Below the pieces are notes generated by a model that was not told the origin of the DNA, did no database searches, and was given only the letters and a program-made list of their open reading frames with translations. The position numbers and the translations under genes were made by a program. A stretch of DNA of 64,000 nucleotides. It comes from Paramoeba atlantica (lineage: Eukaryota > Protista > Discosea). Of the stretch, positions 11,136-59,470 are shown in pieces (position 1 is the stretch's first letter; every line of letters begins with the position of its first letter). The stretch lies in contig CDRNVI010000015.1 in assembly GCA_977017575.1 (NCBI GenBank), positions 124,001 through 188,000 on the forward strand, read 5' to 3'.

Positions 11136-12674
11136 CTGTGACCCCCCCTTTAATAGAGACACCCCCTCAGACCCCCCTTTAATGGAGACAAAATTAGGGG
11201 AAGAATTTTTTGGATGGAGCTATTTTTTTTTTGGGGGGGGGGGCGAAGTGGATAAGAAAATTTGGATTGTCCCTTAAAAAGGGAAGAAAAATTAGAATTC
11301 ACTGAACATTCTATTTGTCGCTTCGCTAAATGCGGTGGTTGTTTTCAAAATAGACTGCCGGGGAGGGAGCGGAGTTGAGGACGGCGCCTATTTCGTCCAA
11401 CTGACAATTATGTAGGGAGGTGAATTCACTATCTTTTCCCAGAACTGACAAATAAACAGGGGGTGGGCGGTGACAAATAGATGTATGTAGGGGGGTGACG
11501 ATAGATGTACATAGTTGCTATATACAGCATATATACTGCATAGATGTATCATAGTTGCTATATACAGTTGCTATATATAGTTGCTATATGTAGATGAACC
11601 CCTCCTACCCTGGAGCTGTTAATTATTGACTTCCTCTTATAGGAGGATAAGTCAGATGTGTGCCCTCTATGGTTGAGATTACTCCTGTGTTGGCACAGAT
11701 GCTTCGAGCATCAGCATTCGCACAGCGGACCTAGGCTGGAACTAGGGGGCTGGAACTAGGCTGGAACTACTACTACTATATAGATAAGGGGTTGGGGGTA
11801 TGATCTCGTGTGATCTCACGTGATCTCGCATTAACTCGCGTGATCTCGTCTTGGGCCTAACCCGCAGCCCCTCAAATGTAGGGGGGATAAAATCCTTTGG
11901 AAGGCAGAGTGCGGAATTTCAACCGCGGCTCTCGAATATCCGTTGTTTCTTAATAGTCAGAGCGTCATGTAACCCCTGAAACCGCACTCTCGATGGCAAA
12001 GTGACCGCTCCAAGGAAAAAGAGCAAGTATGCACCCATTTTACCAAAAATAAGAACCATTCTATTTTTTAACGTATAGTGGTTCCAATTGAACTTCCCCC
12101 CGGCGGAATTCGAACAAAAGCTTTTTTGTCCGTTTTTGCTCATTTTTGTTGCAAACGAGAGATCTCGTTTCGCTAGTGAAGCGCTTTGGCACCTTTTTTT
12201 CCCTAGTGCTCATATGGTGACCCGAAAAACAGCCCAAACAAAATTCTTGATGAATACGAACCTTGGAAGGAAGTCTAAAACCATATGTTTCTGACCCAGG
12301 GGGTACCAGGGGGTCCCTACAAAAAAAGGGCAGCAAATCGCTTAACCAGGAAAACGAAATCTATCCAATGCTGCGAAAAAGAAGAAAAACTGATAAAAAA
12401 ACTCAAAATTCCGCGGCGGGGAAGATATCTTGAAACCACTCTACTTTTGTTCCTCACCACGTTTTCGCATTAACACGACTTTTGTTGACACAACATTTGT
12501 CGCCTCGACTTTTGTTGAGATAACTTTTTAGCCCCCTGTAAGGAAAGGCTTCTGAAACTGAGGCGCCGCGAAGCGGCGCCAATTTTTTTTTCCTGTTTCG
12601 GATTTTCATTTCATCCCCCCCTTTAATAGAGACAAATGACGAAATTGTGTCTACATTAAAGGGGGGGGTCACAG
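11136..12674. mobile_element. Non-autonomous TIR element (Tc1/mariner-type, TA TSD), 1539 bp
   Basis: ~27-bp TIR CTGTGACCCCCCCTTTAATAGAGACAC, TA on both sides (11134-35, 12675-76), subterminal copies of the TIR motif near 11172 and 12615; no transposase ORF recognised. Confidence 0.85.
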
Positions 12675-16186: not shown

Positions 16187-16581
16187 CAGTGCGTGGTGTT
16201 ACTACGGGACGGGTTAATTACGGGACGGGTTAATTACGGGACGGGTTAATTACGGGACGGGTTAATTACGGGACGGGTTAATTACGGGACGGGTATTTAA
16301 GGGACAATATGGGGGTCGGGTCATATATTTGGAATGGGACAAAAGAACTACAAGTGTAGCTCCCAAATCACAGAGCGCGCAAGTTATCAAGCACACATAA
16401 AAATGTTTTTGTAAGATAAGGGAACGAAAAAGGAGACAAGTAAAGGAAGATAATGGAAAGAAAAAGGTATATTAGGGCCTTGAAAAAAAAGGAGAATTAA
16501 AGGACGGTTAATTACGGGACACTTTGGCCTTGATGGGGGGTGTCCCTTAATTAACCCGTCCCGTAATAAGGCCCCGCACTG
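16187..16581. mobile_element. MITE (Tc1/mariner-type, CAGT ends, TA TSD), 395 bp, with six 16-bp subterminal repeats
   Basis: TA|CAGTGCGTGG...GGCCCCGCACTG|TA; ~40-bp imperfect TIR; TACGGGACGGGTTAAT-type unit at 16203, 16219, 16235, 16251, 16267, 16283. Confidence 0.88.
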
Positions 16582-31987: not shown

Positions 31988-32228
31988 TCATTTAAAAACT
32001 TGAATTTAAATTTATCGCCTCAATCAAGAGCTCTCACCTCATCCTTTAGGAAGGGGCCTTTACGTTCCTTAAAAACTTTTCGATCAAATTCTATGAATAT
32101 TTTTGAATTGTAGTCACTGAAAAATCGTAGGGTTTAGCGTTTTAGAGATGTTTAGAGAGTATATTACGCACTTCTTTCGTATCCAAGAATTTCTGTGTAA
32201 AAAAATATATTTTCGCATTGGTGGCACC

Positions 32229-33767
32229 ATGCAATTTTCTCATCGTTGTCTTCGAAGCCCATTTCTGGGGTTGACTCGCAGGGTAATCTTATGCAACATT
32301 CAAACCGCATATCTCGCTCAACAAGCTACCCCAGCAATCAGTGCGGTCACCTTTGCCAGCACACGAGGTCTAGCAAGCGAGGCCCTCAGTAAGACCGATG
32401 ACGGGAAAGTAGTCGCCGCTCCCTCAATGGATCGGGTCTGGGAATTGTGGAGTGAGGGAAATCTTTTTGCTCTGCCTATCGCGGAGCTACAAGCGTTTCT
32501 TCGCGAACAGAAGGTCCCCGTAGACTTGACATGGAAAAAGACAACTCTAGTCAAACAAGTAGAGGAGTTAGTGGGCAAACAGAAAAATACAGGACGGAAT
32601 GTGAAGGATATTACCCCAGTCTCCGGTTTAGCCAAAACCGCAGAGGGTCCCGGAGGTGCGCTCAATCCCGCGGATGTCTACGGAGAGCTCGCCGGTGACG
32701 GCATCCTCGAGAGTCAGACCTTTGTGGACGTGCAACAAAGTGGGCTCTACACGGGTGCCGATGCCATGGGTCCGATCATCCCCCGTGCATTTCAGCTTAT
32801 GCATGAGTCCATCTGTCCCGACGTCCTACTCAGTCGTATCAACACCTCCGCATTTCCCGGGGGAAATGCCACTCTCCAGGCCTTTACTTTAATCCAAGCT
32901 AAGGCCGCGAGTGCGAACAAAGCTCGCTTTAACAAAGCCTTCCAGTGGTGTGTGATGAATTTATGGAATATGAATATGGACGGGGAGGCTCATGTCTCCC
33001 TCGGGCGTCTGTTGTTGTGGAAAGGAGCGCAGGGGAAGCAAGTCCAAGCCCCGCTCCCCGGGGGCGCCGATGAGTACCAGACGCTGTGGACGCTGCAGCA
33101 ACAGCTCCAGGCGGCGCAACCCTACAGCTGGCTTGGTATTGCCCATGGCGATTGTGGAAAACATGTTGCGGAGTTCCTGTCACAGAACGGGTGGACGGAG
33201 ACGCAAAATGGGGAAACCACCACGACCTATCGTGTCAGTGTGCAGCGACAAAAAGAAGTCCTGGAGGGGGAAGTGGGGGTAGACGGAAAGACGATTAGCT
33301 TACAAAAAAGCTGGGAGCGGTTTCTACTTACGTTCTACGTACGAGACGCCATGCCCGATGTGCGTATCCAGCTTCGCGCACGTATGCCACTGAAAAAGAA
33401 GACGGCAGAAATGTTTCAGAACGTGAATTTGATTAACGTCCTTCCGGGTGGCGAAAAGGTCAGTAGTGCGCTCCCTGGTGATCTCGGCGAGGTTGTCTAT
33501 GTCTTGCGACAAGAGACCAAGAGTTGGGAAAAGAAATTGAACTCAGGTATTCTGTTAACACTATCAGAAACGACCACCAACGTTGCGTTTACGAAGAAGG
33601 ACACACGTGAGAAAAGGTTGGAGTATGAATTAAGCACAAAGCTACCGACGCAGGACAGCAAGCCAGATCTGACAGCGCTAAGTGACGAGCTTTGGGAGGC
33701 GGTACTGTCGTTTGCGTCGGCGGTGCAGCCTGGTATGCAGGCTTTCCGTTGTTCTCCTAAGTCGTAG
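32229..33767 (+). CDS. RESC2: Guide-RNA-binding RESC2 (GAP1/GRBC2) homolog, mitochondrial RNA editing
   Basis: VWELWSEGNLF, PRAFQLMH, AFQWCVMNLWNMNMDGE, MPDVRIQLRAR, RLEYE, ALSDELWE match T. brucei GAP1 blocks as I recall them; RESC1 paralog not excluded; upstream ATG at 32148. Confidence 0.85.
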   Translation: MQFSHRCLRSPFLGLTRRVILCNIQTAYLAQQATPAISAVTFASTRGLASEALSKTDDGKVVAAPSMDRVWELWSEGNLFALPIAELQAFLREQKVPVDLTWKKTTLVKQVEELVGKQKNTGRNVKDITPVSGLAKTAEGPGGALNPADVYGELAGDGILESQTFVDVQQSGLYTGADAMGPIIPRAFQLMHESICPDVLLSRINTSAFPGGNATLQAFTLIQAKAASANKARFNKAFQWCVMNLWNMNMDGEAHVSLGRLLLWKGAQGKQVQAPLPGGADEYQTLWTLQQQLQAAQPYSWLGIAHGDCGKHVAEFLSQNGWTETQNGETTTTYRVSVQRQKEVLEGEVGVDGKTISLQKSWERFLLTFYVRDAMPDVRIQLRARMPLKKKTAEMFQNVNLINVLPGGEKVSSALPGDLGEVVYVLRQETKSWEKKLNSGILLTLSETTTNVAFTKKDTREKRLEYELSTKLPTQDSKPDLTALSDELWEAVLSFASAVQPGMQAFRCSPKS

Positions 33768-34096
33768 ACTTAAAGCTCGAAGTGAGCGCTTTCTTCGGGG
33801 AAATCAGAAGAAAAGTAATTTGGTTCTTGGATACGTAGTGCAGATCTATAAATGTACTACACTCATCACATATATTTTGGTGCGCAGAGCACGTCACAAA
33901 ATACAATGATTCTTCCTGTTTATCTTGTAACAAGGCTGATACAACGTTCTTATGCATGCGCTTGAGAATTTGGTACACATGTATTCGATTCAGATTTTTG
34001 TGTAAGCTGTTTGGTGCTAAAATTAGTGTTTTTTAACGAGTAGGAACCCTTTTTTGTCTTTTTGAGGGTAACGGGAACTCTGAATATTAATTTACA

Positions 34097-45324: not shown

Positions 45325-45486
45325 AATTGGCTTTCTCTAGTCCAGGCGAAATCTGATGCTGTCCTGTCTCACAGCTGCCCTACTCCATACACTCTGTCAC
45401 AACCGAACTCACGTTCCGACGTGCGTAACATGTGAAAACATGTCTGCAGCAGAATACACAATATAGAAAATCTAGAGCTCTACATA

Positions 45487-47046
45487 CAGGGGTGCAAATC
45501 AGATGCTGGAGGGGGGGGTCTAAAATTAGCAATGTTTGCGCAATTTTGAAAAATAATAGCGCATTCGAGAGCTCTCGCAGAGATCTGTGTATTTGGATAG
45601 GCGGTTTCCCGGGGTGTAACGGGGTGGTCAACTGAGGAGAAGCCCAAAAACGTCAAAATGCAAAAAATGAAAGAAAAATTTTGTACGTTCAATAATTACA
45701 ACTTTCCCCTTTTTTTCTACTACTATGTCGAAACGCCGCGGAATGCTGTTTAAAGTGTTTATGAGCATGTCATGACCATCTGTTTTAATGTAATCAACCG
45801 CCTTTTCAATAGAATACAAAAGTTCAGTCCTATTTTCTGGGTTTGTACCATCTTTAATAAAGGTGTCCATGATGTCCCGAATGTTTTCAATAGGGTTAAG
45901 ATCTGGGGATTTTGGGGGAAAGTCTAAAACAAAGACTTGGTTTTCTCGAAAGGTTTTAAAGGTGCCATTGTGACAAGGATCATTACCCATGGCAACTCTA
46001 GTACCGCTATGACGCTTCAAGTAACTTAAGAAACCTCCCCTTTTTGTCATAGCTGCTTTAAAAACATTTGAAGTAATCGTAACTTTCCCATTTCTGTCCC
46101 TGTCGGGAAAGACGTGATAAAAAACTCCATAAATAAGGCTTATACCCATCCAAACGTTTACTCCATCTCCCCCAAACCATTTTTGCGCAGCTTTTAGGGG
46201 TGGCTTGGGGGGTCACTCGCTCGGCAAATGTAAGAACGGCTTTCGCGCCCAAGTTGACAAGTGAACTTTTTTTCGTCACACCAAATAATGTGACGAAGCT
46301 GTGCGACGGACCACTTCTGCATTTTCAGTGCAAATGTTAGTCGCTTGGCCTTGTGAACTTCAGTTAAGAACAGGCCTTTAGTAAAAGATCGTTGGATCAT
46401 CCCTTCGTCCTTCAAAAAATTTACTAGGGTCGGCCTGCTGCAGGAGAAACCACTTTTCCTAACCTCTCGAAGAATAAAACTCCACGAGGGACAACCTCGC
46501 GCACTTGTCGCGTTGGACGCGTCAATAATTTCGCGGCATGCCTCAAGAAGCTCCGGCGTTGTCACAGTGCGTTCGCGAGGAGGCGTAGCACGTTCAACAT
46601 CCCCGGTTTCCTCAAATCGCTTAACCCACAACTTAACAGTGCTGTCGTGGACGCCTTGTCTTTAGCAAGTGGCACTGTAAGAGTTTGTATTCTCGTGATC
46701 TTTAGCGAGAAGCATCCTGTGTGAATATTTTGTGTGCCCCGGGGGTTCATGTGATCTATCAGATAAGCTTTTACTGTTTTGCTTAGAGAGGGATCGCTTT
46801 TGCGGCATAATAGTGAGCTGAAAAACAAAAAAACACGGAAAAATCTGCAAAAATTGAAAAATCTGCAACGTTTAGGGGGGTAAAAAACCTTTAAAAAAAT
46901 ATCTTTTTCAAATTTGTTTTCTTTTAACGTGATAATAGCGCCGAAACATAGATCTCTGCGAGAGCTCTCGAATGCGCTATTATTTTTCAAAATTGCGCAA
47001 ACATTGCTAATTTTAGACCCCCCCCAGCATCTGATTTGCACCCCTG
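45487..47046 (-). mobile_element. Tc1/mariner DNA transposon, 1560 bp, ~100-bp TIRs, TA TSD
   Basis: TA|CAGGGGTGCAAATCAG...CTGATTTGCACCCCTG|TA; TIRs 45487-45586 and 46950-47046. Confidence 0.95.
45689..46808 (-). pseudogene. Decayed Tc1-like DDE transposase
   Basis: HTH GVHDSTVKLWVKRFEETG, WCDEKKF, GGDGVNVWMG, GNDPCH, PPKSPDLNPIEN; in-frame TAA at 46662-64 and frameshift at the G6 run 46207-12. Confidence 0.9.
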
Positions 47047-47408
47047 TATATTTACACATGTATTTACATGTATATTGAACGTAGTGGAAATTAACTGAAT
47101 GTAGATTAATACTGGATTGTCAGCAACATAAGAGTGTTTGACAGGTACATGGAAAGATCACATCACTTTGCATTCTTACAGCGTGGATTCGCGGCTTAGC
47201 CATCGCATAGGAGAGGGTTCAGTTCAGAAAGATATTGTGTATGATTGACAGCTATCTTCCGATGTTGGACATGCACAGAATCGCACAAATAACCCATATC
47301 ATCCTATATAAAGAGTAGCAAAAATATTAGTCTATTTATTACCTGGTTTTGTTCTTTTGTTGGATAGTTTTCCATTTTACTGTCGTAGTGCTGTATTCAG
47401 TCTATAAA

Positions 47409-49760: not shown

Positions 49761-51302
49761 ATGTCGAACATACCCTCATATATGAGAGGTACAATGACCT
49801 CAAAATGCAAAGCGCAGGAGCAAAGTTTGCGAAGTAGCACATTACTTGGAAACAACAAGAGGGGAAACAATTCTTTGTCAAGGTCTTTTACCTTCACTCG
49901 ACCGAACTTTACGAAGCCACTTGACGTGCAGCAACAATGCAGTGAACTGAAAACAGGACAAAAGATCGGATTATATCCACTTTCTTCAGAGAGTGACACA
50001 CGCTATTTTCGTCGAAGAGGATGTCCCCAAGCGGATGGTATATCGAACTCCGATGCACATCATACAACACATATTCTTGATTCCGGGAAAGCGCCACTTC
50101 TGCCCGCATACATTGAGTCAACTACTCCTTTACCCGGTGATGTCCCACGAATACAAAGACGTCCTTGTCCTAGAGCCCGAACCACTCCTTGTGCTTCTCT
50201 TGTAGAAATTTCGGAAGGCCTTGCTACGAGCCGTAGTGATAGCTCTACCCATGCCAGCGGCCGCAGGTGCAGTTCCTCGAGCCGCAAGGCCTACTCTAAT
50301 TTATTGAGCGGTCCTCCGATCGTTGTTCCCCCCAACAATCATGTGGCTCCGCGTCCATATTGGGTACGTGGAAATGAGACCACACAGTCAGGCATGTCTT
50401 GCGGTCGCCGCAGCGCTCGATCCTGTTCGGTAACTCAAGTCGACACACGTCGGACGCTATTGTGTGGTGAGAGCGGCTCCGTGGGGCCTACCCCAATTCT
50501 ACCCTCTGTTGGTCGGCAGGACTCTACCAGTGTCAGCTTACCCGTTCGTACCCACCCTACATGCCGCTCTGCGCGTCAAAACTCCAGTAACCTACTTAAT
50601 TTCGTCCATGGAACGCCGTGCGCCTCGGATTCAACCCCCCGTGGAGGACTCCGTCGCTCCACCTCCATGTCCCAACCCCCTACAGCCCATGTGTTACAAC
50701 AACACATCGGCACCGAACCAGCACATCCCACAAACCCTACAACAGCAGCAGCACCAGCAGCAGCAACTACAGTCTTCACCCCCCTGACACGTCAACCCGT
50801 GGCTTCCCACCCCCAATCCGTACCTTCCCACCACCACCACCACCATCACCACAACAACAACCCCCTCCTTCCCGGAGCCTCCCCACACGATGATCCCACG
50901 CCCCGTCGCTTCTCCCTTCGCCCCATGTCCGGCCCCCCTCCCTTCACCCCCCCTCCCCTCCCCCCCCTCCGTCTCCCCAACCTGGCCATGAAACGCGCTG
51001 CCTCCGCGCGTCGAGGCGCCAGTGACGTGTTCCATTTCAAGGCGCCAGAGGCCAACGCCCGTGACCCGGTGGGGGGACGCGCCACGGGGCGTCGGTCGGT
51101 AGCGGGGAGAGGCCACGGGGGGAGGGGGGGTGACCCTGGGGTTTCGGGAGGGGGGAGGCACCCGGGGCCGTACAACGGCGCCCCGGCGTTTACGGTGAAC
51201 CTTCGCTCGTTTACGACGTTGGAGCCGTGGGGGAGGGGACGGAAAGAGGTGGGGGGAGGAAAGAGGTGGGGGGAGGGGGGGAAGGCGTATGGGTTTGGGT
51301 AG
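49761..51302 (+). CDS. Low-complexity Ser/Pro/Arg-rich hypothetical protein (3' frame uncertain)
   Basis: 513-aa ORF with a His run and C/G homopolymer tracts near the 3' end. Confidence 0.6.
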   Translation: MSNIPSYMRGTMTSKCKAQEQSLRSSTLLGNNKRGNNSLSRSFTFTRPNFTKPLDVQQQCSELKTGQKIGLYPLSSESDTRYFRRRGCPQADGISNSDAHHTTHILDSGKAPLLPAYIESTTPLPGDVPRIQRRPCPRARTTPCASLVEISEGLATSRSDSSTHASGRRCSSSSRKAYSNLLSGPPIVVPPNNHVAPRPYWVRGNETTQSGMSCGRRSARSCSVTQVDTRRTLLCGESGSVGPTPILPSVGRQDSTSVSLPVRTHPTCRSARQNSSNLLNFVHGTPCASDSTPRGGLRRSTSMSQPPTAHVLQQHIGTEPAHPTNPTTAAAPAAATTVFTPLTRQPVASHPQSVPSHHHHHHHHNNNPLLPGASPHDDPTPRRFSLRPMSGPPPFTPPPLPPLRLPNLAMKRAASARRGASDVFHFKAPEANARDPVGGRATGRRSVAGRGHGGRGGDPGVSGGGRHPGPYNGAPAFTVNLRSFTTLEPWGRGRKEVGGGKRWGEGGKAYGFG

Positions 51303-51722
51303 AGAAAGGGAGAGGGGGGGGGAGGGGGGGTAACGTGTAGGGGTAGTGAAAAGCAAAGGTGGGTTTGTTTTTTCTATGGTTGTTTGGATGGGTAGAATAG
51401 AGGAGAGTTGTGAATGGCTTGAATGTGGTAATATGGAGGGTATTTATCGTTCTAGATACTTATTAACTTTTGAAGTGTCAACGGGTATGATGATTCAAGT
51501 GATTTCAGAGACGCGCATGCGGAGTACATTACATGAGTAGTTATGTACATCCTTGAACTGAGTAGCCTACCATTGGAAGTACATGTAGTAGAGAGAGACA
51601 ATCTTCCGCTTGTAAATTACATGTTAACCCTTATGGTCATTGTTCGCTTATAAATATTAATAAGCTTTAACTATTAATATATATTCTTATCCTGGCAAAT
51701 TTAACTTTTCTTTTGAAGACTT

Positions 51723-54287
51723 ATGTTCGTATCTCTAATGTATAGAACATATAGAAAAAGCGTTCAAACTCGCCTTGACGATAAAATAGATCTGATTTCT
51801 TTGTTCGAATCTAAAGCAAAACTTCGGAACTTTGAGCAGGTGTCTACTCGAAACGTTAAGCCTGGTACTGAAGATTGCGCCGCGCCTAACGCACAACAGG
51901 CTTTTGAACACATCAGGAAGGAGTTTAGCGTGAGAAACGACCAAAATAATGCGCCGTTTTGCGGTAAGACGCTGCGAATTGCAAGGGAATCTTGTCTCAA
52001 GGCCGTAGGAGAGTGTACTAACAATGCTGTGGAAAGACAATATCACAACACGTCAAAAAGTAGAAAAATGTCTGATATGTTCGTACATTCTAGCGATGCC
52101 AAGATGGGTAGTACAACGCCATGTACCAGCAGTTCTAATATGGAGAAGGCTTTTGCAATTCGTGATAATGTAAATGGAAAGATATTGAATTCGCAAACTG
52201 TGCAACACACTGTGTCTGAAAAAAGGTTTTCAAAAGAACTGACTGAGGTTTTTTTTACTGTGAAAAGGAATGTTGAAAAGCAAAATAGTGTCCGCGAGTA
52301 CAATGTTATACTACTTAACTGCCTAAAGAATCACATAATGCCTGCGCAACAAACTTTACTTGAACGATCAGTGAAGAAAGCGCGTACTTTGTATTCAAAG
52401 AACAAAGAAGAAAAGGTATTGAATCTATTACCTGAGGCTGAGTGGCGTTCAATCAAGAGTCTTCCGAATGACCATACATTAGATTTAGAAACGGGTCGCT
52501 TATGCAATATCTCCCGCTCTTTTCAAAGGACTCGTTCAACGTGTCAGAGGACCGAAGTAGCAGATGTTCAAATTAACGAAATTACTAGCAACGGAAAAAT
52601 AGTATTTTCGCCTTCTAATGATGATAATCGAAGTGTGGTACCGGTTAGTGAGAACCATCGATATCTCTTATGCGTCTTACATAGTACGGGCAAAGGTACT
52701 ACGCAAGCCATAGAAACGTTGTCCAGCGTTTTCCGGATTTCAAAAGAGCGGTTTTCGACTACACAGCTTCACGAACGTAATATTGTTTTCTCGCAGCTAA
52801 TTTCTATTGAATTTAAGCAACCCGCTGATAAATTCGTCACACTTGTGAAACGTATCAATAACTCACAAGCTCACCTAATAAGGCTTTGTCCTTTTTCTTG
52901 GGAAAAAAACAAACTGCAGGTCGGAAATTTAAAAGGAAATTATTACTCACTGCTTCTTCGCCATTTCAAGGACAGGACATCAACTCTGGAGCGTCATGTT
53001 TCAACCTTGGGCTCAAATGGATTTATTAACTATTTTAGTCAGCGTCGATTTGGGTTTTGTTCCTTTGGAAACCATCTAATTGGTCTTTGTATAGCACGGA
53101 AGGACTTTGAGACGGCTTTAACAATGATAGTGCAAAATGAAGCCGAGCGTATTGGAACGACAGATATTCAGTCGATATTTTCTCGTCATCCATGGGTGCA
53201 ACAGTTTACCTCTGTCCTATGTGACAAAAAAGAGGGTGAAAATATTCTGGAATCAGTTTATCATAGTCTTCCGATTTCGGAACGAATGTTACATTTTACG
53301 GCACTTAGGAGTTATCTGTGGAATTTACTGGCATCTTGCCGATACAGCGCTGCGTTGGGTGACTCTACAAGTGCCTGTGTAGGTGACCTCATTGGTGGCG
53401 ACAGCCCTGGGATGAGCGCCGTTTCGTGGGAAAATGTCGATTCTGAAACACCTACTCTAAACAACCACGACAATGTCCATAATCTCCTAGCTCAGCGGTT
53501 TCCCAGAGACACAGTGAATTCTAAACTTATTACAGAAGTGGATTCTCAAGATCTGGCCACGGCCACCAGTATTGAGCAAGTTCTAGTGGCAATACCGTTG
53601 AACCCATCCTCACCTTGTTGCTCCCTTGAAAAAGAAATATGCAAATCCTTACATATCCGTAAAGGTAATCTTTTACGAAATTTTGGTCTTACTGAAATAT
53701 TGCGTTCCAAAGGTTGCAATGCAGAATATCGCTACATGATAGCTCGTCCACGAAAATATAGTATCTTTGTAATACCGGAAAGTGAAAAATTAGAGTCAAG
53801 TATCCGATTGCGCTCCGATCAAAATATCGCATTCACGTCCGAACCACTGCTGTCGCGTACAGAACTCGCCGGTTCACTTCTATCCCTTCGTTTATTTTCT
53901 TCATGTTGGCGGGCAGCAAGAGCGAAGACAACACTTTACGGTTCGTATGCCAGAAGAGGAACTCGAGCTGCAGCTATTGGTTTCATGTTACCTTATCCAG
54001 CTATGTGCTCTTCCGCCCTTCGAGAAGTCGTCCGTTTTAAGCGACAAGTACAAAGTTGGCCAGTACGTGGTGCAGAAGGTGATCACGATGAACCGGCGCA
54101 CAGGCCCGTTCGGTTGCGGGAGGTTGCTAATCTTGACCAACAAGAAGACGTACGCCACGAAGGTGACTACTTGAAGATAGGGTTTCATAGAAAGAGTTTA
54201 AGAAATGCTACAAATCAAAAGCTTACGGGGACACATCGAGATAAGCTGAAGAAAAAGTTTGAATGGGATGTTGACAAATTGAGTTGA
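51723..54287 (+). CDS. TruD/Pus7-family pseudouridine synthase homolog, apparently catalytically degenerate
   Basis: LQVGNLKGNYYSLLLR, GFINYFSQRRFG, LRSYLWN; the GTKD motif position reads QLHE. Confidence 0.8.
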   Translation: MFVSLMYRTYRKSVQTRLDDKIDLISLFESKAKLRNFEQVSTRNVKPGTEDCAAPNAQQAFEHIRKEFSVRNDQNNAPFCGKTLRIARESCLKAVGECTNNAVERQYHNTSKSRKMSDMFVHSSDAKMGSTTPCTSSSNMEKAFAIRDNVNGKILNSQTVQHTVSEKRFSKELTEVFFTVKRNVEKQNSVREYNVILLNCLKNHIMPAQQTLLERSVKKARTLYSKNKEEKVLNLLPEAEWRSIKSLPNDHTLDLETGRLCNISRSFQRTRSTCQRTEVADVQINEITSNGKIVFSPSNDDNRSVVPVSENHRYLLCVLHSTGKGTTQAIETLSSVFRISKERFSTTQLHERNIVFSQLISIEFKQPADKFVTLVKRINNSQAHLIRLCPFSWEKNKLQVGNLKGNYYSLLLRHFKDRTSTLERHVSTLGSNGFINYFSQRRFGFCSFGNHLIGLCIARKDFETALTMIVQNEAERIGTTDIQSIFSRHPWVQQFTSVLCDKKEGENILESVYHSLPISERMLHFTALRSYLWNLLASCRYSAALGDSTSACVGDLIGGDSPGMSAVSWENVDSETPTLNNHDNVHNLLAQRFPRDTVNSKLITEVDSQDLATATSIEQVLVAIPLNPSSPCCSLEKEICKSLHIRKGNLLRNFGLTEILRSKGCNAEYRYMIARPRKYSIFVIPESEKLESSIRLRSDQNIAFTSEPLLSRTELAGSLLSLRLFSSCWRAARAKTTLYGSYARRGTRAAAIGFMLPYPAMCSSALREVVRFKRQVQSWPVRGAEGDHDEPAHRPVRLREVANLDQQEDVRHEGDYLKIGFHRKSLRNATNQKLTGTHRDKLKKKFEWDVDKLS

Positions 54288-57527: not shown

Positions 57528-57880
57528 GCGGGAGGGGTCATCCCCGGGTAGGGGGGTGGAAAATGCGCGCCAAGACCCCGGCTACTGCTTCTGATGGTTT
57601 TTTTTCGAAAAAAAAATCTCAAAAGAAATTTCGTGCGGTATGCCCCCCCTAGACCCCCTCCCGTAGCCCCCCCCCCCATAGATCCCCCATTTTTTTCAAT
57701 TTTTTTTCAATTTTGGACCACCGGAGCCCCTTTTACATTTTTTTTTATTATATTACTGTGTTCCTTTTTATATTTTTTCTTCTATTATATTACTGTGTTC
57801 CTCTTTATATTTTCCCTGTTTTTGTTCACTTTTTTTCAATAATCGAGGGTATAGCGGTAGTTATACAACCACCGCAATAA
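57528..57880. repeat. Dispersed repeat (copy 2 of the 15868-16177 family)
   Basis: Shared CCCCGGGTAGGGGGGTGGAAAATGCGCGCCAAGACCCCGGCTAC, TTGGACCACCGGAGCCCC and CAACCACCGCAATAA blocks. Confidence 0.88.
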
Positions 57881-57906
57881 GTTGATTTACCTTTATCCAC
57901 TTAAAT

Positions 57907-58342
57907 GAAAAGGAAGACAGAAGAAGAAGACATGGAGGGCTCTGCAGCGCCAACCGTTAGGGTAGAGTCTCAGGTCACCGACCTTCATTGTCTTGCTACC
58001 CCCTTCCCAGGCGGCACTCGACGCCTTGCGGCCCGAGCACGGCTACCCAACCGTAGCTACCAGGACGGGCGTCCAACCCCGTTGCATCGTGTAGGCTGTG
58101 TCTCAAGCCTCCTTTGCGTAAGCATCTCGCAATTTAGCGGCTGTGCTGGAGCCTGGTTCAGCTCGGCGGTTCCGGGTCGGTCCTCCAGGGGAGCGGAGCT
58201 GGGTGTGGGCCTTGAAGGCACTCCTGATCGCTTTCCCTTTGTAGTGAGGCCGCCAGGTTGCGAGTTTTGTCGATAGCGGGAATCGAACCAACAACCTGCA
58301 GGTTGTAAGTCCACCGTCTACGAACTACGCCCGCACCGCTTT
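57907..58342 (-). mobile_element. Candidate tRNA-headed SINE-like element (~435 bp)
   Basis: tRNA-like head, GC-rich body, (TTC)n/T4 tail, flanked by CCACTTAAAT (57897-906) and CCACCTAAAT (58343-52). Confidence 0.55.
58268..58334 (-). pseudogene. Degenerate tRNA-like sequence (TAC at the anticodon position, truncated D arm)
   Basis: Canonical spacing of anticodon loop CT-TAC-AA, 5-nt variable loop and B box GGTTCGATTCC; stems imperfect and acceptor stem not formed. Confidence 0.7.
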
Positions 58343-58387
58343 CCACCTAAATACAATTCCACTTAAATACAATTGCGGTGGTTGCAT

Positions 58388-58419
58388 AACTATAAAGATA
58401 CAGTTTCTGTACCCTGTTG
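58388..58419 (+). other. Spliced-leader (mini-exon)-like sequence
   Basis: AACTATAAAGATACAGTTTCTGTAC contains the conserved kinetoplastid SL core GATACAGTTTCTGTAC; followed by CCTGTTG|GG, with no GT donor. Confidence 0.7.
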
Positions 58420-58696
58420 GGACTTTTTCCTTGGCTCATCCTTTCTTTCCCCGGCAACGGGCATAGTCTTACTGTTTTATATGCCGGCCGGCACTAAGGT
58501 CGGAACTGTCCCTCTTGCCGCTGAAGCAGGGGACGCGCCATCACCCCTTCACCACTTTCCGACTCACTCCCCTGAAGTAAATGTGCTTCCCTCCCTCGGC
58601 TTCTCTTTCTCCCGCGCCTGCCTTTCCGTGGAGGCAATGCGTCACGGTGTCTCCCTTGAGGACTACTAGACGTGTCCTGCGCCGAAGAGACTCTCG

Positions 58697-58862
58697 GCTC
58701 TCTGCACCTGGGGGTCGCCCAGCTCTCTGCACCTCGGCTCTGTCGCAGCTCTCCGCACCCGGATTGCCCCCGAAACAGTAATATGGGGATTACGCATCCG
58801 GCTCTCTGCACCTGCACAAGACAACCGAGCTCTCTGCACCTGGGACCCCAGCTCTCTACACC
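58697..58862. repeat. Six copies of the 12-mer GCTCTCTGCACC
   Basis: At about 58697, 58722, 58748, 58801, 58829 and 58851, with irregular spacers. Confidence 0.85.
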
Positions 58863-59326
58863 CGCACACCTCCGGCGAGGACTCACGTGATGCACCCGTC
58901 GTATGCGGGTAAGGATATTGTGAGAATAATCTCTGCACTACAAGTGCATGATTAAACAAATTCGCTCCAGGCTGCACACTACCGTTCCAGGCTGCACACT
59001 CGCCAAAGCGGAAGCCGGGAAACTCAAAAAATATGGGTAGATGGCAAGCGAGAGAGGAACGGTCCTCTACCCGCTAGCCTTCACGGTCTTCGGAATCCCG
59101 GGGAACGCGACACTCTCCCTTTTGCGGAAGTTGGGCCGGTAAACTTCCAACACAAAAGGCGTTTACAGCGCACATGATCATGGCCACTGGCGTCGCCATC
59201 CAACGCGGCAACGCTCAGATGCTGAGAGCGGCCTCACTGGAGCAGGACGGCGTGGGTAAAGGGGGCTTTGTGGTGACTGGATAGGACCATTTTATCGTTT
59301 ATTTATTTGAGAAACTGTACTACTCC

Positions 59327-59470
59327 AACTAGACCGCTCTACCCTCGATTATTGAAAAAAGGTGAACAAAAACAGTAGAACGTTTTCACTCAAAACATGA
59401 GGATTAATACGTGGTGTACAGTACTATAATAGAAGAAAAACTTATAAAAGGGGGCTCCAGTGGTCCAAAA
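59327..59470. repeat. Partial inverted copy of the dispersed repeat
   Basis: ACCGCTCTACCCTCGATTATTGAAAAAA...AAAGGGGGCTCCAGTGGTCCAAAA is the reverse complement of the 3' part of 57528-57880. Confidence 0.8.

Follow-up and report, generated by a model that had tools for sequence, protein, structure and literature searches.

A Defective Tc1-like DNA Transposon with DD32E Spacing in a Kinetoplastid-type Gene Cluster and the Probably Long-resident Family to Which It Belongs

To our knowledge, the mobile DNA of kinetoplastids has long been described as consisting of retroelements only. A 1560-bp stretch of DNA that looks like a cut-and-paste transposon, lying between genes of kinetoplastid type, therefore raises the question of what this element is, whether it is still functional, and how its family came to be in the genome. 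The stretch was analyzed within a piece of DNA of 64,000 nucleotides, which as a whole is called the window here. The original prediction had read the stretch as a bona fide Tc1/mariner transposon and had suggested a substantial and fairly recent invasion. According to the present analysis, it is very probably a dead, non-autonomous Tc1-like copy at an intergenic TA of a kinetoplastid-type gene cluster, and its family belongs to a long-resident DD32E radiation with recent bursts.

Extent and Setting of the Element

The boundaries of the element were read directly from the sequence. It lies on the minus strand and has a length of 1560 bp (window 45487–47046), with the termini CAGGGG...CCCCTG directly inside the flanking TAs. 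The whole element and the features at its ends are listed below.

45485–45486, no strand: left TA target-site duplication (read directly)
45487–47046, minus strand: whole element, defective copy of the DD32E Tc1-like family A (near-full copies in the same genome)
45487–45590, minus strand: terminal inverted repeat (TIR) of ~104 nt at the 3' end of the element in the transposase sense, first bases CAGGGGTGCAAATCAG (inverted-repeat pairs, arm alignment)
46946–47046, minus strand: TIR of ~101 nt at the 5' end of the element in the transposase sense (inverted-repeat pairs, arm alignment, BLAST)
47047–47048, no strand: right TA target-site duplication (read directly)

A repeat finder returned two inverted arm segments, one of 80 nt (99% identity) and one of 32 nt (97%). 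They are separated by a G-run whose length differs by 3 nt between the two ends, and when joined they give the TIR lengths of ~104 and ~101 nt; by BLAST the two TIRs of the window copy are 96% identical. Both the nearly identical TIRs of ~100 bp and the TA duplication that had been predicted were found. Direct repeats of at least 8 nt were not detected inside the TIR of the window copy, and a TIR of the IR/DR type was ruled out on this basis.

The insertion point is situated 160 bp past the stop of a Vps51-N-like frame and ~300 bp ahead of the next frame, and the element is oriented antisense to both neighboring reading frames. Insertion inside a gene was considered and rejected. When the element and one TA were excised in silico, no flanking frames were fused, so the site is intergenic. 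The GC content of the element (0.429) is close to that of the window (0.430), and its GC3 falls in the host range. A tblastn search of the window with 16 transposases matched this element only. A TruD/Pus7-like protein is encoded in the neighborhood of the element; a word search with it at a strict threshold gave a single self-like match at 96%, and an adjoining frame of 455 aa gave weak zinc-finger look-alikes only in the ESM Atlas.

State of the Transposase Gene in the Window Copy

The pseudogene was searched as separate reading-frame pieces of the minus strand and not through its stop. The pieces matched the Pfam families HTH_Tnp_Tc3_2 (5.9e-9) and DDE_3 (4.5e-4), and intact sister proteins aligned across window positions 46808–45706 in tblastn. 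Defects were called by aligning the window copy with six other near-full copies of the family.

45628–46808, minus strand: transposase pseudogene with ATG at 46806–46808 and a frame-shifted tail to the stop at 45628–45630 (Pfam, tblastn)
46662–46664, minus strand: premature TAA stop at codon 49, a C-to-T change; the other copies have C at the first base (alignment of copies)
46207–46213, minus strand: C-run one base short compared with five sister copies, frameshift near codon 199 (alignment of copies)
45985–45987, minus strand: codon of the second catalytic Asp, GGT (Gly), which is GAT in the other copies (alignment of copies)
45710–45717, minus strand: A-run one base short compared with four sister copies, C-terminal frameshift (alignment of copies)

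A stop and a frameshift had both been anticipated, as had the Gly in place of the second catalytic Asp; the frameshift in the A-run is additional. The column of the second Asp holds an invariant Asp in an alignment of 30 sequences. Both frameshifts sit in homopolymer runs, which are error-prone in sequencing, but the second contig agrees: the copy on it (L002) has the stop, both frameshifts, and the GGT codon as well. The loss in the A-run is common to L002 and a further copy, L004. With Asp275Gly, the stop at codon 49, and the two frameshifts, the window copy has neither an intact triad nor an open frame, and because of these changes it is predicted to be unable to make an active enzyme. Since both TIRs are kept, it could still be mobilized in trans by intact relatives.

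Intact Sister Copies and Class of the Element

A search for intact reading frames had been proposed as a check with the original prediction. Uninterrupted frames were present in two copies, L003 (1740–2855, 372 aa) and L010 (1739–2857, 373 aa), and both proteins contain HTH_23, HTH_Tnp_Tc3_2, and DDE_3 according to Pfam. The helix-turn-helix region of the intact copies is made up of two parts, HTH_23 at residues 30–72 and HTH_Tnp_Tc3_2 at residues 108–162; the predicted model of the intact transposase has helices at 28–68 and 85–134. The catalytic triad in L003 consists of D178, D275, and E308. Across 30 sequences D275 and E308 were invariant, and D178 was conserved at 90% or more. The Pfam match to DDE_3 covers the C-terminal part only (model positions 79–80 to 138–145 of 146), and for the first Asp the alignment with Sleeping Beauty and the predicted fold were used instead of Pfam.

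Among solved structures, a single one was matched by sequence, that of the SB100X catalytic domain of Sleeping Beauty (E 1.9e-9). Its three catalytic positions, D153, D244, and E279, align with the motifs WCDEKKF, AMDNAPCH, and NPIENIW. An AlphaFold2 model built on the 30-sequence alignment had a mean pLDDT of 81.9. Its top Foldseek matches (probability 1.00) were Sleeping Beauty (5cr4), Mos1 (3hot/4u7b), and the transposase domain of SETMAR. The distance from the second Asp to the Glu is 32 residues in all complete representatives of the DD32E clade and 34 residues in Sleeping Beauty and all 14 aligned outside relatives, which confirmed the spacing of 32 against 34 that had been counted by hand on the window copy. 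Triad and spacing are kept in 13 of the 16 aligned lineage representatives.

For the IS630/Tc1/mariner superfamily, a size of about 1.3–2.4 kb with a single transposase gene was taken as the standard. The element has a TA duplication, TIRs of ~100 nt around one frame, a length of 1560 bp, a helix-turn-helix, and a D-D-E triad. The original claim of a genuine member of this superfamily could be upheld on the TIRs, the TA, and the matches to HTH_Tnp_Tc3_2 and DDE_3. Glu as the third residue and the domain pair DDE_3/HTH_Tnp_Tc3_2 are those of Tc1 in the strict sense (DD34E), whereas the spacing of 32 residues is not. The Glu also departs from the DD34D triad of mariner, and Transposase_1 (mariner) gave no Pfam match at E ≤0.01 in the intact copies. 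Pfam matches to the pogo markers (DDE_1 and CENP-B-type DNA-binding domains) and to the Merlin domain DDE_Tnp_IS1595 were likewise absent from the intact copies. Merlin makes duplications of 8–9 bp; the duplication here is TA. In mechanism the element appears to be an ordinary Tc1-type transposon, with the 32-residue spacing as a small variant.

Intact members of the family encode a transposase of ~372 aa, with the two-part helix-turn-helix and an RNase-H-fold domain carrying D178/D275/E308. By analogy to Tc1, Sleeping Beauty, and Mos1, the enzyme would bind the ~100-nt TIRs and pair the ends, then excise the element and integrate it at a TA, which would be duplicated. The family itself forms a branch of a lineage-specific DD32E radiation that has probably long been diversifying in this genome.

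Copies in the Genome, Mobility, and Selection

The assembly that contains the window (45.7 Mb) was searched for further copies. A DNA search returned nine near-full copies at 96–100% identity, a second subfamily (family B) at ~84% identity to the window element, and truncated copies together with short internally deleted derivatives. The copies of family A are mutually 97.3–98.3% identical. TA was found on both sides in all 10 full-length copies examined. Their insertion sites differ, except in the pairs L001/L002 and L010/L011, which share common flanks and on that account are probably haplotype or segmental duplicates. L010 and L011 are ~99% identical with the same flanks; in L001/L002 the element, with 9 mismatches in 1560, has a higher mismatch density than the flanks. 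Haplotype-like duplicate contigs occur in the assembly (C15 compared with C53 and C69). A 25-nt pattern made up of TA and the 23 terminal bases of the TIR was found 52 times in the genome, compared with 0 times for a reversed-pattern control.

A deletion derivative of 775–795 bp with one common internal breakpoint was present at no fewer than four distinct TA sites. Because a single breakpoint recurs at at least four different TA sites, this derivative is best read as a non-autonomous deletion product that was moved in trans. Between families A and B a dN/dS of 0.19 was obtained at a dS of 0.45, and the low ratio suggests that the transposase was under purifying selection while the two families diverged. 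Recent activity of single families is supported.

A search for empty sites yielded none, and no presence/absence polymorphism either, because the sequence to the left of each of three other full-length copies proved to be repetitive in its own right; these copies are accordingly nested in other elements. One ~500-bp repeat (L005:1000–1500, C54:319270–319770) has at least 10 copies at 97–99% identity and stops exactly at the TA adjoining the DD32E TIR in L005; the same adjacency of repeat and TIR recurs at C20:401445–401934 and C56:24380–24911. The full-length copy L004 is nested in an element of the DD34E family described below.

Two Clades of Tc1-type Transposases

A protein search of the assembly with a more distant family member returned at least 113 DD32E transposase loci, haplotype duplicates included. 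They fall into identity classes of ~100, 63, 58, 56, 49, 47, and 38%, and many have no internal stop. Fifteen representatives were retrieved for comparison. Nearly all resolved representatives measure ~1.55–1.6 kb and have TIRs of 100–125 nt, with CAGGGG at the termini next to TA. In a quick maximum-likelihood tree the 15 genome sequences grouped together as a single clade, with an SH-aLRT of 100 and a stem length of 1.68 changes per site; the family of the window element is one of its three main branches. Protein identity inside the clade ranges from 37 to 100%, and between lineages from 37 to 63%.

When 1.84 billion representative proteins were searched exhaustively with HMMER, 11 of them scored below E 1e-30. 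All four traced matches above ~35% identity come from the ENA assembly ERZ24900291, which is from the same organism, and two proteins from a word search (P0001 and P0004) likewise trace to it. The nearest outsider, P0138 (GCA_029981815.1), is 31% identical to the DD32E transposase and has an Asp-Gly reading and a spacing of 33. The distance of 32 residues from the second Asp to the Glu is also seen in a few unrelated arthropod-type Tc1 proteins; this spacing therefore seems to be a marker of the DD32E clade and not unique in nature.

A separate, canonical DD34E Tc1 clade with a transposase of 336 aa is also present (for example L031:2681–3688 and L063–L065). At least 122 loci were counted in the assembly, again with haplotype duplicates included, in subfamilies at 100, 53, 49, and 44% and with many open frames. 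Outside relatives of this clade are 42–47% identical and comprise metagenomic, fish, and IS630-labelled proteins. The exact back-translated DLNPIEN motif was counted 261 times in the genome, compared with none in the control. The transposases of the DD34E and DD32E clades share 19% identity. The DD32E family is not a lone invader, as the genome holds several hundred Tc1-type loci.

Host Character and Authenticity of the Junctions

Thirty of the 34 long reading frames of the window are on the plus strand. The frame at window 32148–33764, 12 kb upstream of the element, matched the RESC1/2 CYTH-like domain of Pfam (2.6e-104), and in a comparison of its protein with Trypanosoma brucei structures the matches were RESC2 (8fn4, 3.5e-76) and RESC1 (5.9e-63). 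RESC1/2 are guide-RNA-binding proteins of the kinetoplastid machinery for U-insertion/deletion editing. The GC content of the window rises at 32001–34000 (0.49), which spans the RESC1/2 gene, and at 50001–52000 (0.535), with surroundings of ~0.42.

A pattern of the trypanosomatid-consensus spliced leader had no match in the assembly, and a looser pattern gave a kinetoplastid-like spliced-leader motif (ACAGTTTCTGTACCTTGTTG followed by GTA) at 168 sites genome-wide on many contigs. The 3' part of the spliced leader (ATAAAGATACAGTTTCTGTACCTTGTTG, then GTA and a conserved intron-like stretch) is scattered, with no single tandem array, and the upstream sequence is different at every spliced-leader-like site (L033–L036 among the 168 sites). 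Copies of the element and the spliced-leader motif are both present on contigs C2, C4, C9, C12, C14, C15, C16, C21, C29, C41, C44, C49, C54, and C56. The same insertion is also present on contig C53, where the junctions agree and 4.56 kb align at 99.67% identity (13 mismatches), so that two assembled haplotypes or duplicates agree. In ERZ24900291 a copy of family B is found together with its flanks at 99.93%. The contig of the window appears to be of kinetoplastid type, an assignment that draws on RESC1/2, the spliced-leader motif, and gene order and not on a phylogeny.

Alternative Explanations

A recent arrival of the family through horizontal transfer, whether from a host, from prey, or from a co-resident organism, part of which the original prediction had considered possible, would agree with the 97–100% identity of copies within single families and with the many intact reading frames, and Tc1/mariner elements are known for horizontal transfer. 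Such an arrival is nonetheless improbable. All 15 of the 15 DD32E representatives fall into one clade (SH-aLRT 100) with a stem of 1.68 and identities down to 37%, and the 32-residue spacing is clade-wide, whereas nearly all outsiders have 34 with few exceptions at 32–33. Families A and B are separated by a dS of 0.45 at a dN/dS of 0.19, the composition of the element is that of its surroundings (GC 0.429 compared with 0.430, GC3 within the host range), and the traced HMMER matches above ~35% all lead back to ERZ24900291 and hence to the same organism. With the nearest outsider at 31%, the suggested transfer from a host found no backing. The invasion that had been proposed holds insofar as DNA transposons are abundant and single families were recently active; a recent arrival is not supported, given protein identities of 37–63% between lineages and the dN/dS of 0.19. 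The data agree with a Tc1-type population that has been resident for long, has diversified, and was recently active, and not with a recent invasion.

That DNA of another organism was misjoined or misbinned with kinetoplastid sequence might be suspected, as the genome seems to be derived from, or mirrored in, the metagenome-style ENA assembly ERZ24900291. Contamination or a chimeric join is very unlikely, however. The element lies within a continuous one-strand gene cluster that includes RESC1/2 on the same contig, C53 repeats its junctions at 99.67% over 4.56 kb, and the ENA assembly reproduces a family-B copy and the DNA on either side of it at 99.93%. Many contigs have both element copies and the spliced-leader motif, with copies on dozens of spliced-leader contigs, and the composition of the element is identical to that of its surroundings; here the original prediction, which had argued against contamination from the genes on both flanks, was sustained. 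Almost no weight can be given to the idea that the stretch is a domesticated transposase gene and not a mobile element. The purifying selection on the family transposase would suit it, but such selection is also expected in an active transposon lineage. Moreover, four changes have disabled the gene of the window copy and made it a pseudogene. The family has many copies whose TIRs are conserved and which have a TA duplication at each different site, its deletion derivatives have been mobilized, and no single-copy, syntenic, TIR-less orthologue was seen.

Comparison with Known Transposons

The long-resident Tc1-type family is closest in its features to Tc1 of Caenorhabditis elegans and Sleeping Beauty. 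It shares with them the TA duplication, TIR ends of the CAG(G/T) type, a length of ~1.6 kb with one frame, the pair of HTH_Tnp_Tc3_2 and DDE_3, and an RNase-H fold with a D-D-E triad; in both sequence and fold, the intact transposase is matched best by the Sleeping Beauty catalytic domain. Unlike these DD34E elements, the family has a distance of 32 residues from the second Asp to the Glu, the two missing residues being located just past the DNxPxH motif, and its host is a kinetoplastid-type protist. Outside Tc1 proteins reach at most 31–35% identity to the DD32E transposase. Sleeping Beauty has IR/DR ends, whereas the TIRs of ~100 nt found here are without a direct repeat of 8 nt or longer.

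With the mariner element Mos1 (DD34D) the family has the superfamily, the fold, and the TA target in common, and the full-length model could be aligned with paired-end complexes of Mos1. In place of the third catalytic Asp of Mos1 it has Glu, and the TIRs of ~100 nt contrast with those of Mos1, which have ~28 nt. Mos1 transposes when it is put into Leishmania, so the chemistry works in kinetoplastid cells. The genome's own DD34E clade belongs to the same superfamily and is likewise multicopy with open frames. It differs from the DD32E family in sequence (19% identity), in its spacing of 34, and in having outside relatives at 42–47%.

Merlin of Bodo saltans and Perkinsela sp. provides a parallel as a class II element with TIRs in non-trypanosomatid kinetoplastids. 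Its copies were described in 2021 as few and degenerate with imperfect TIRs, and those of Perkinsela were judged inactive; many of the degenerate copies in B. saltans are antisense to the gene cluster, as is the window copy (PMC8101967). Merlin is a member of another superfamily (with DDE_Tnp_IS1595), and in contrast to it the present genome has hundreds of Tc1-type loci with many open frames. A survey of 57 trypanosomatid genomes in 2025 found no class II element and treated earlier claims as false positives (PMC12278014). The statement that class II transposons are absent thus still holds for trypanosomatids (PMC12278014) and fails for kinetoplastids at large, from which Merlin has been reported (PMC8101967). 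In the Diplonema genome paper, MULE-, Helitron-, and TATE-like frames were described and no Tc1/mariner (PMC10161547). The open-access papers and preprints searched contained no report of Tc1/mariner elements in kinetoplastids, nor of a class II element there beyond Merlin, and the designation DD32E occurred in none of their transposon papers.

With a DD32E radiation and a DD34E clade, hundreds of loci, and many open frames, we lean slightly toward regarding this as the first kinetoplastid genome documented to contain class II transposons in abundance, probably still active ones. Trypanosomatids would in that case have lost DNA transposons secondarily, and their absence would not characterize the group as a whole. 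Gene clusters on one strand with trans-splicing would then tolerate DNA transposons, and the genome could serve as a natural system for studying the control of cut-and-paste elements in such genomes. It would also provide kinetoplastid genetics with a native transposon system that targets TA, perhaps as a home-grown tool for mutagenesis.

Other Elements in the Window

Three further repeat-bounded units were observed in the window. At 11136–12674, a TA-flanked TIR element of 1539 bp with the ends CTGTGACCCCCCC.../...GGGGGGGTCACAG lies inside a short-period repeat; it showed no similarity to DD32E transposases in tblastn. A miniature element of 395 bp at 16187–16581 is flanked by TA and has CAGTGCG ends and TIRs of ~40 nt, which is the type of a Tc1/mariner-like MITE. 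At 57816–59375, a unit of 1560 bp is bounded by 43-nt inverted repeats at 95% identity and contains a tRNA-like stretch and a truncated spliced-leader-like piece.
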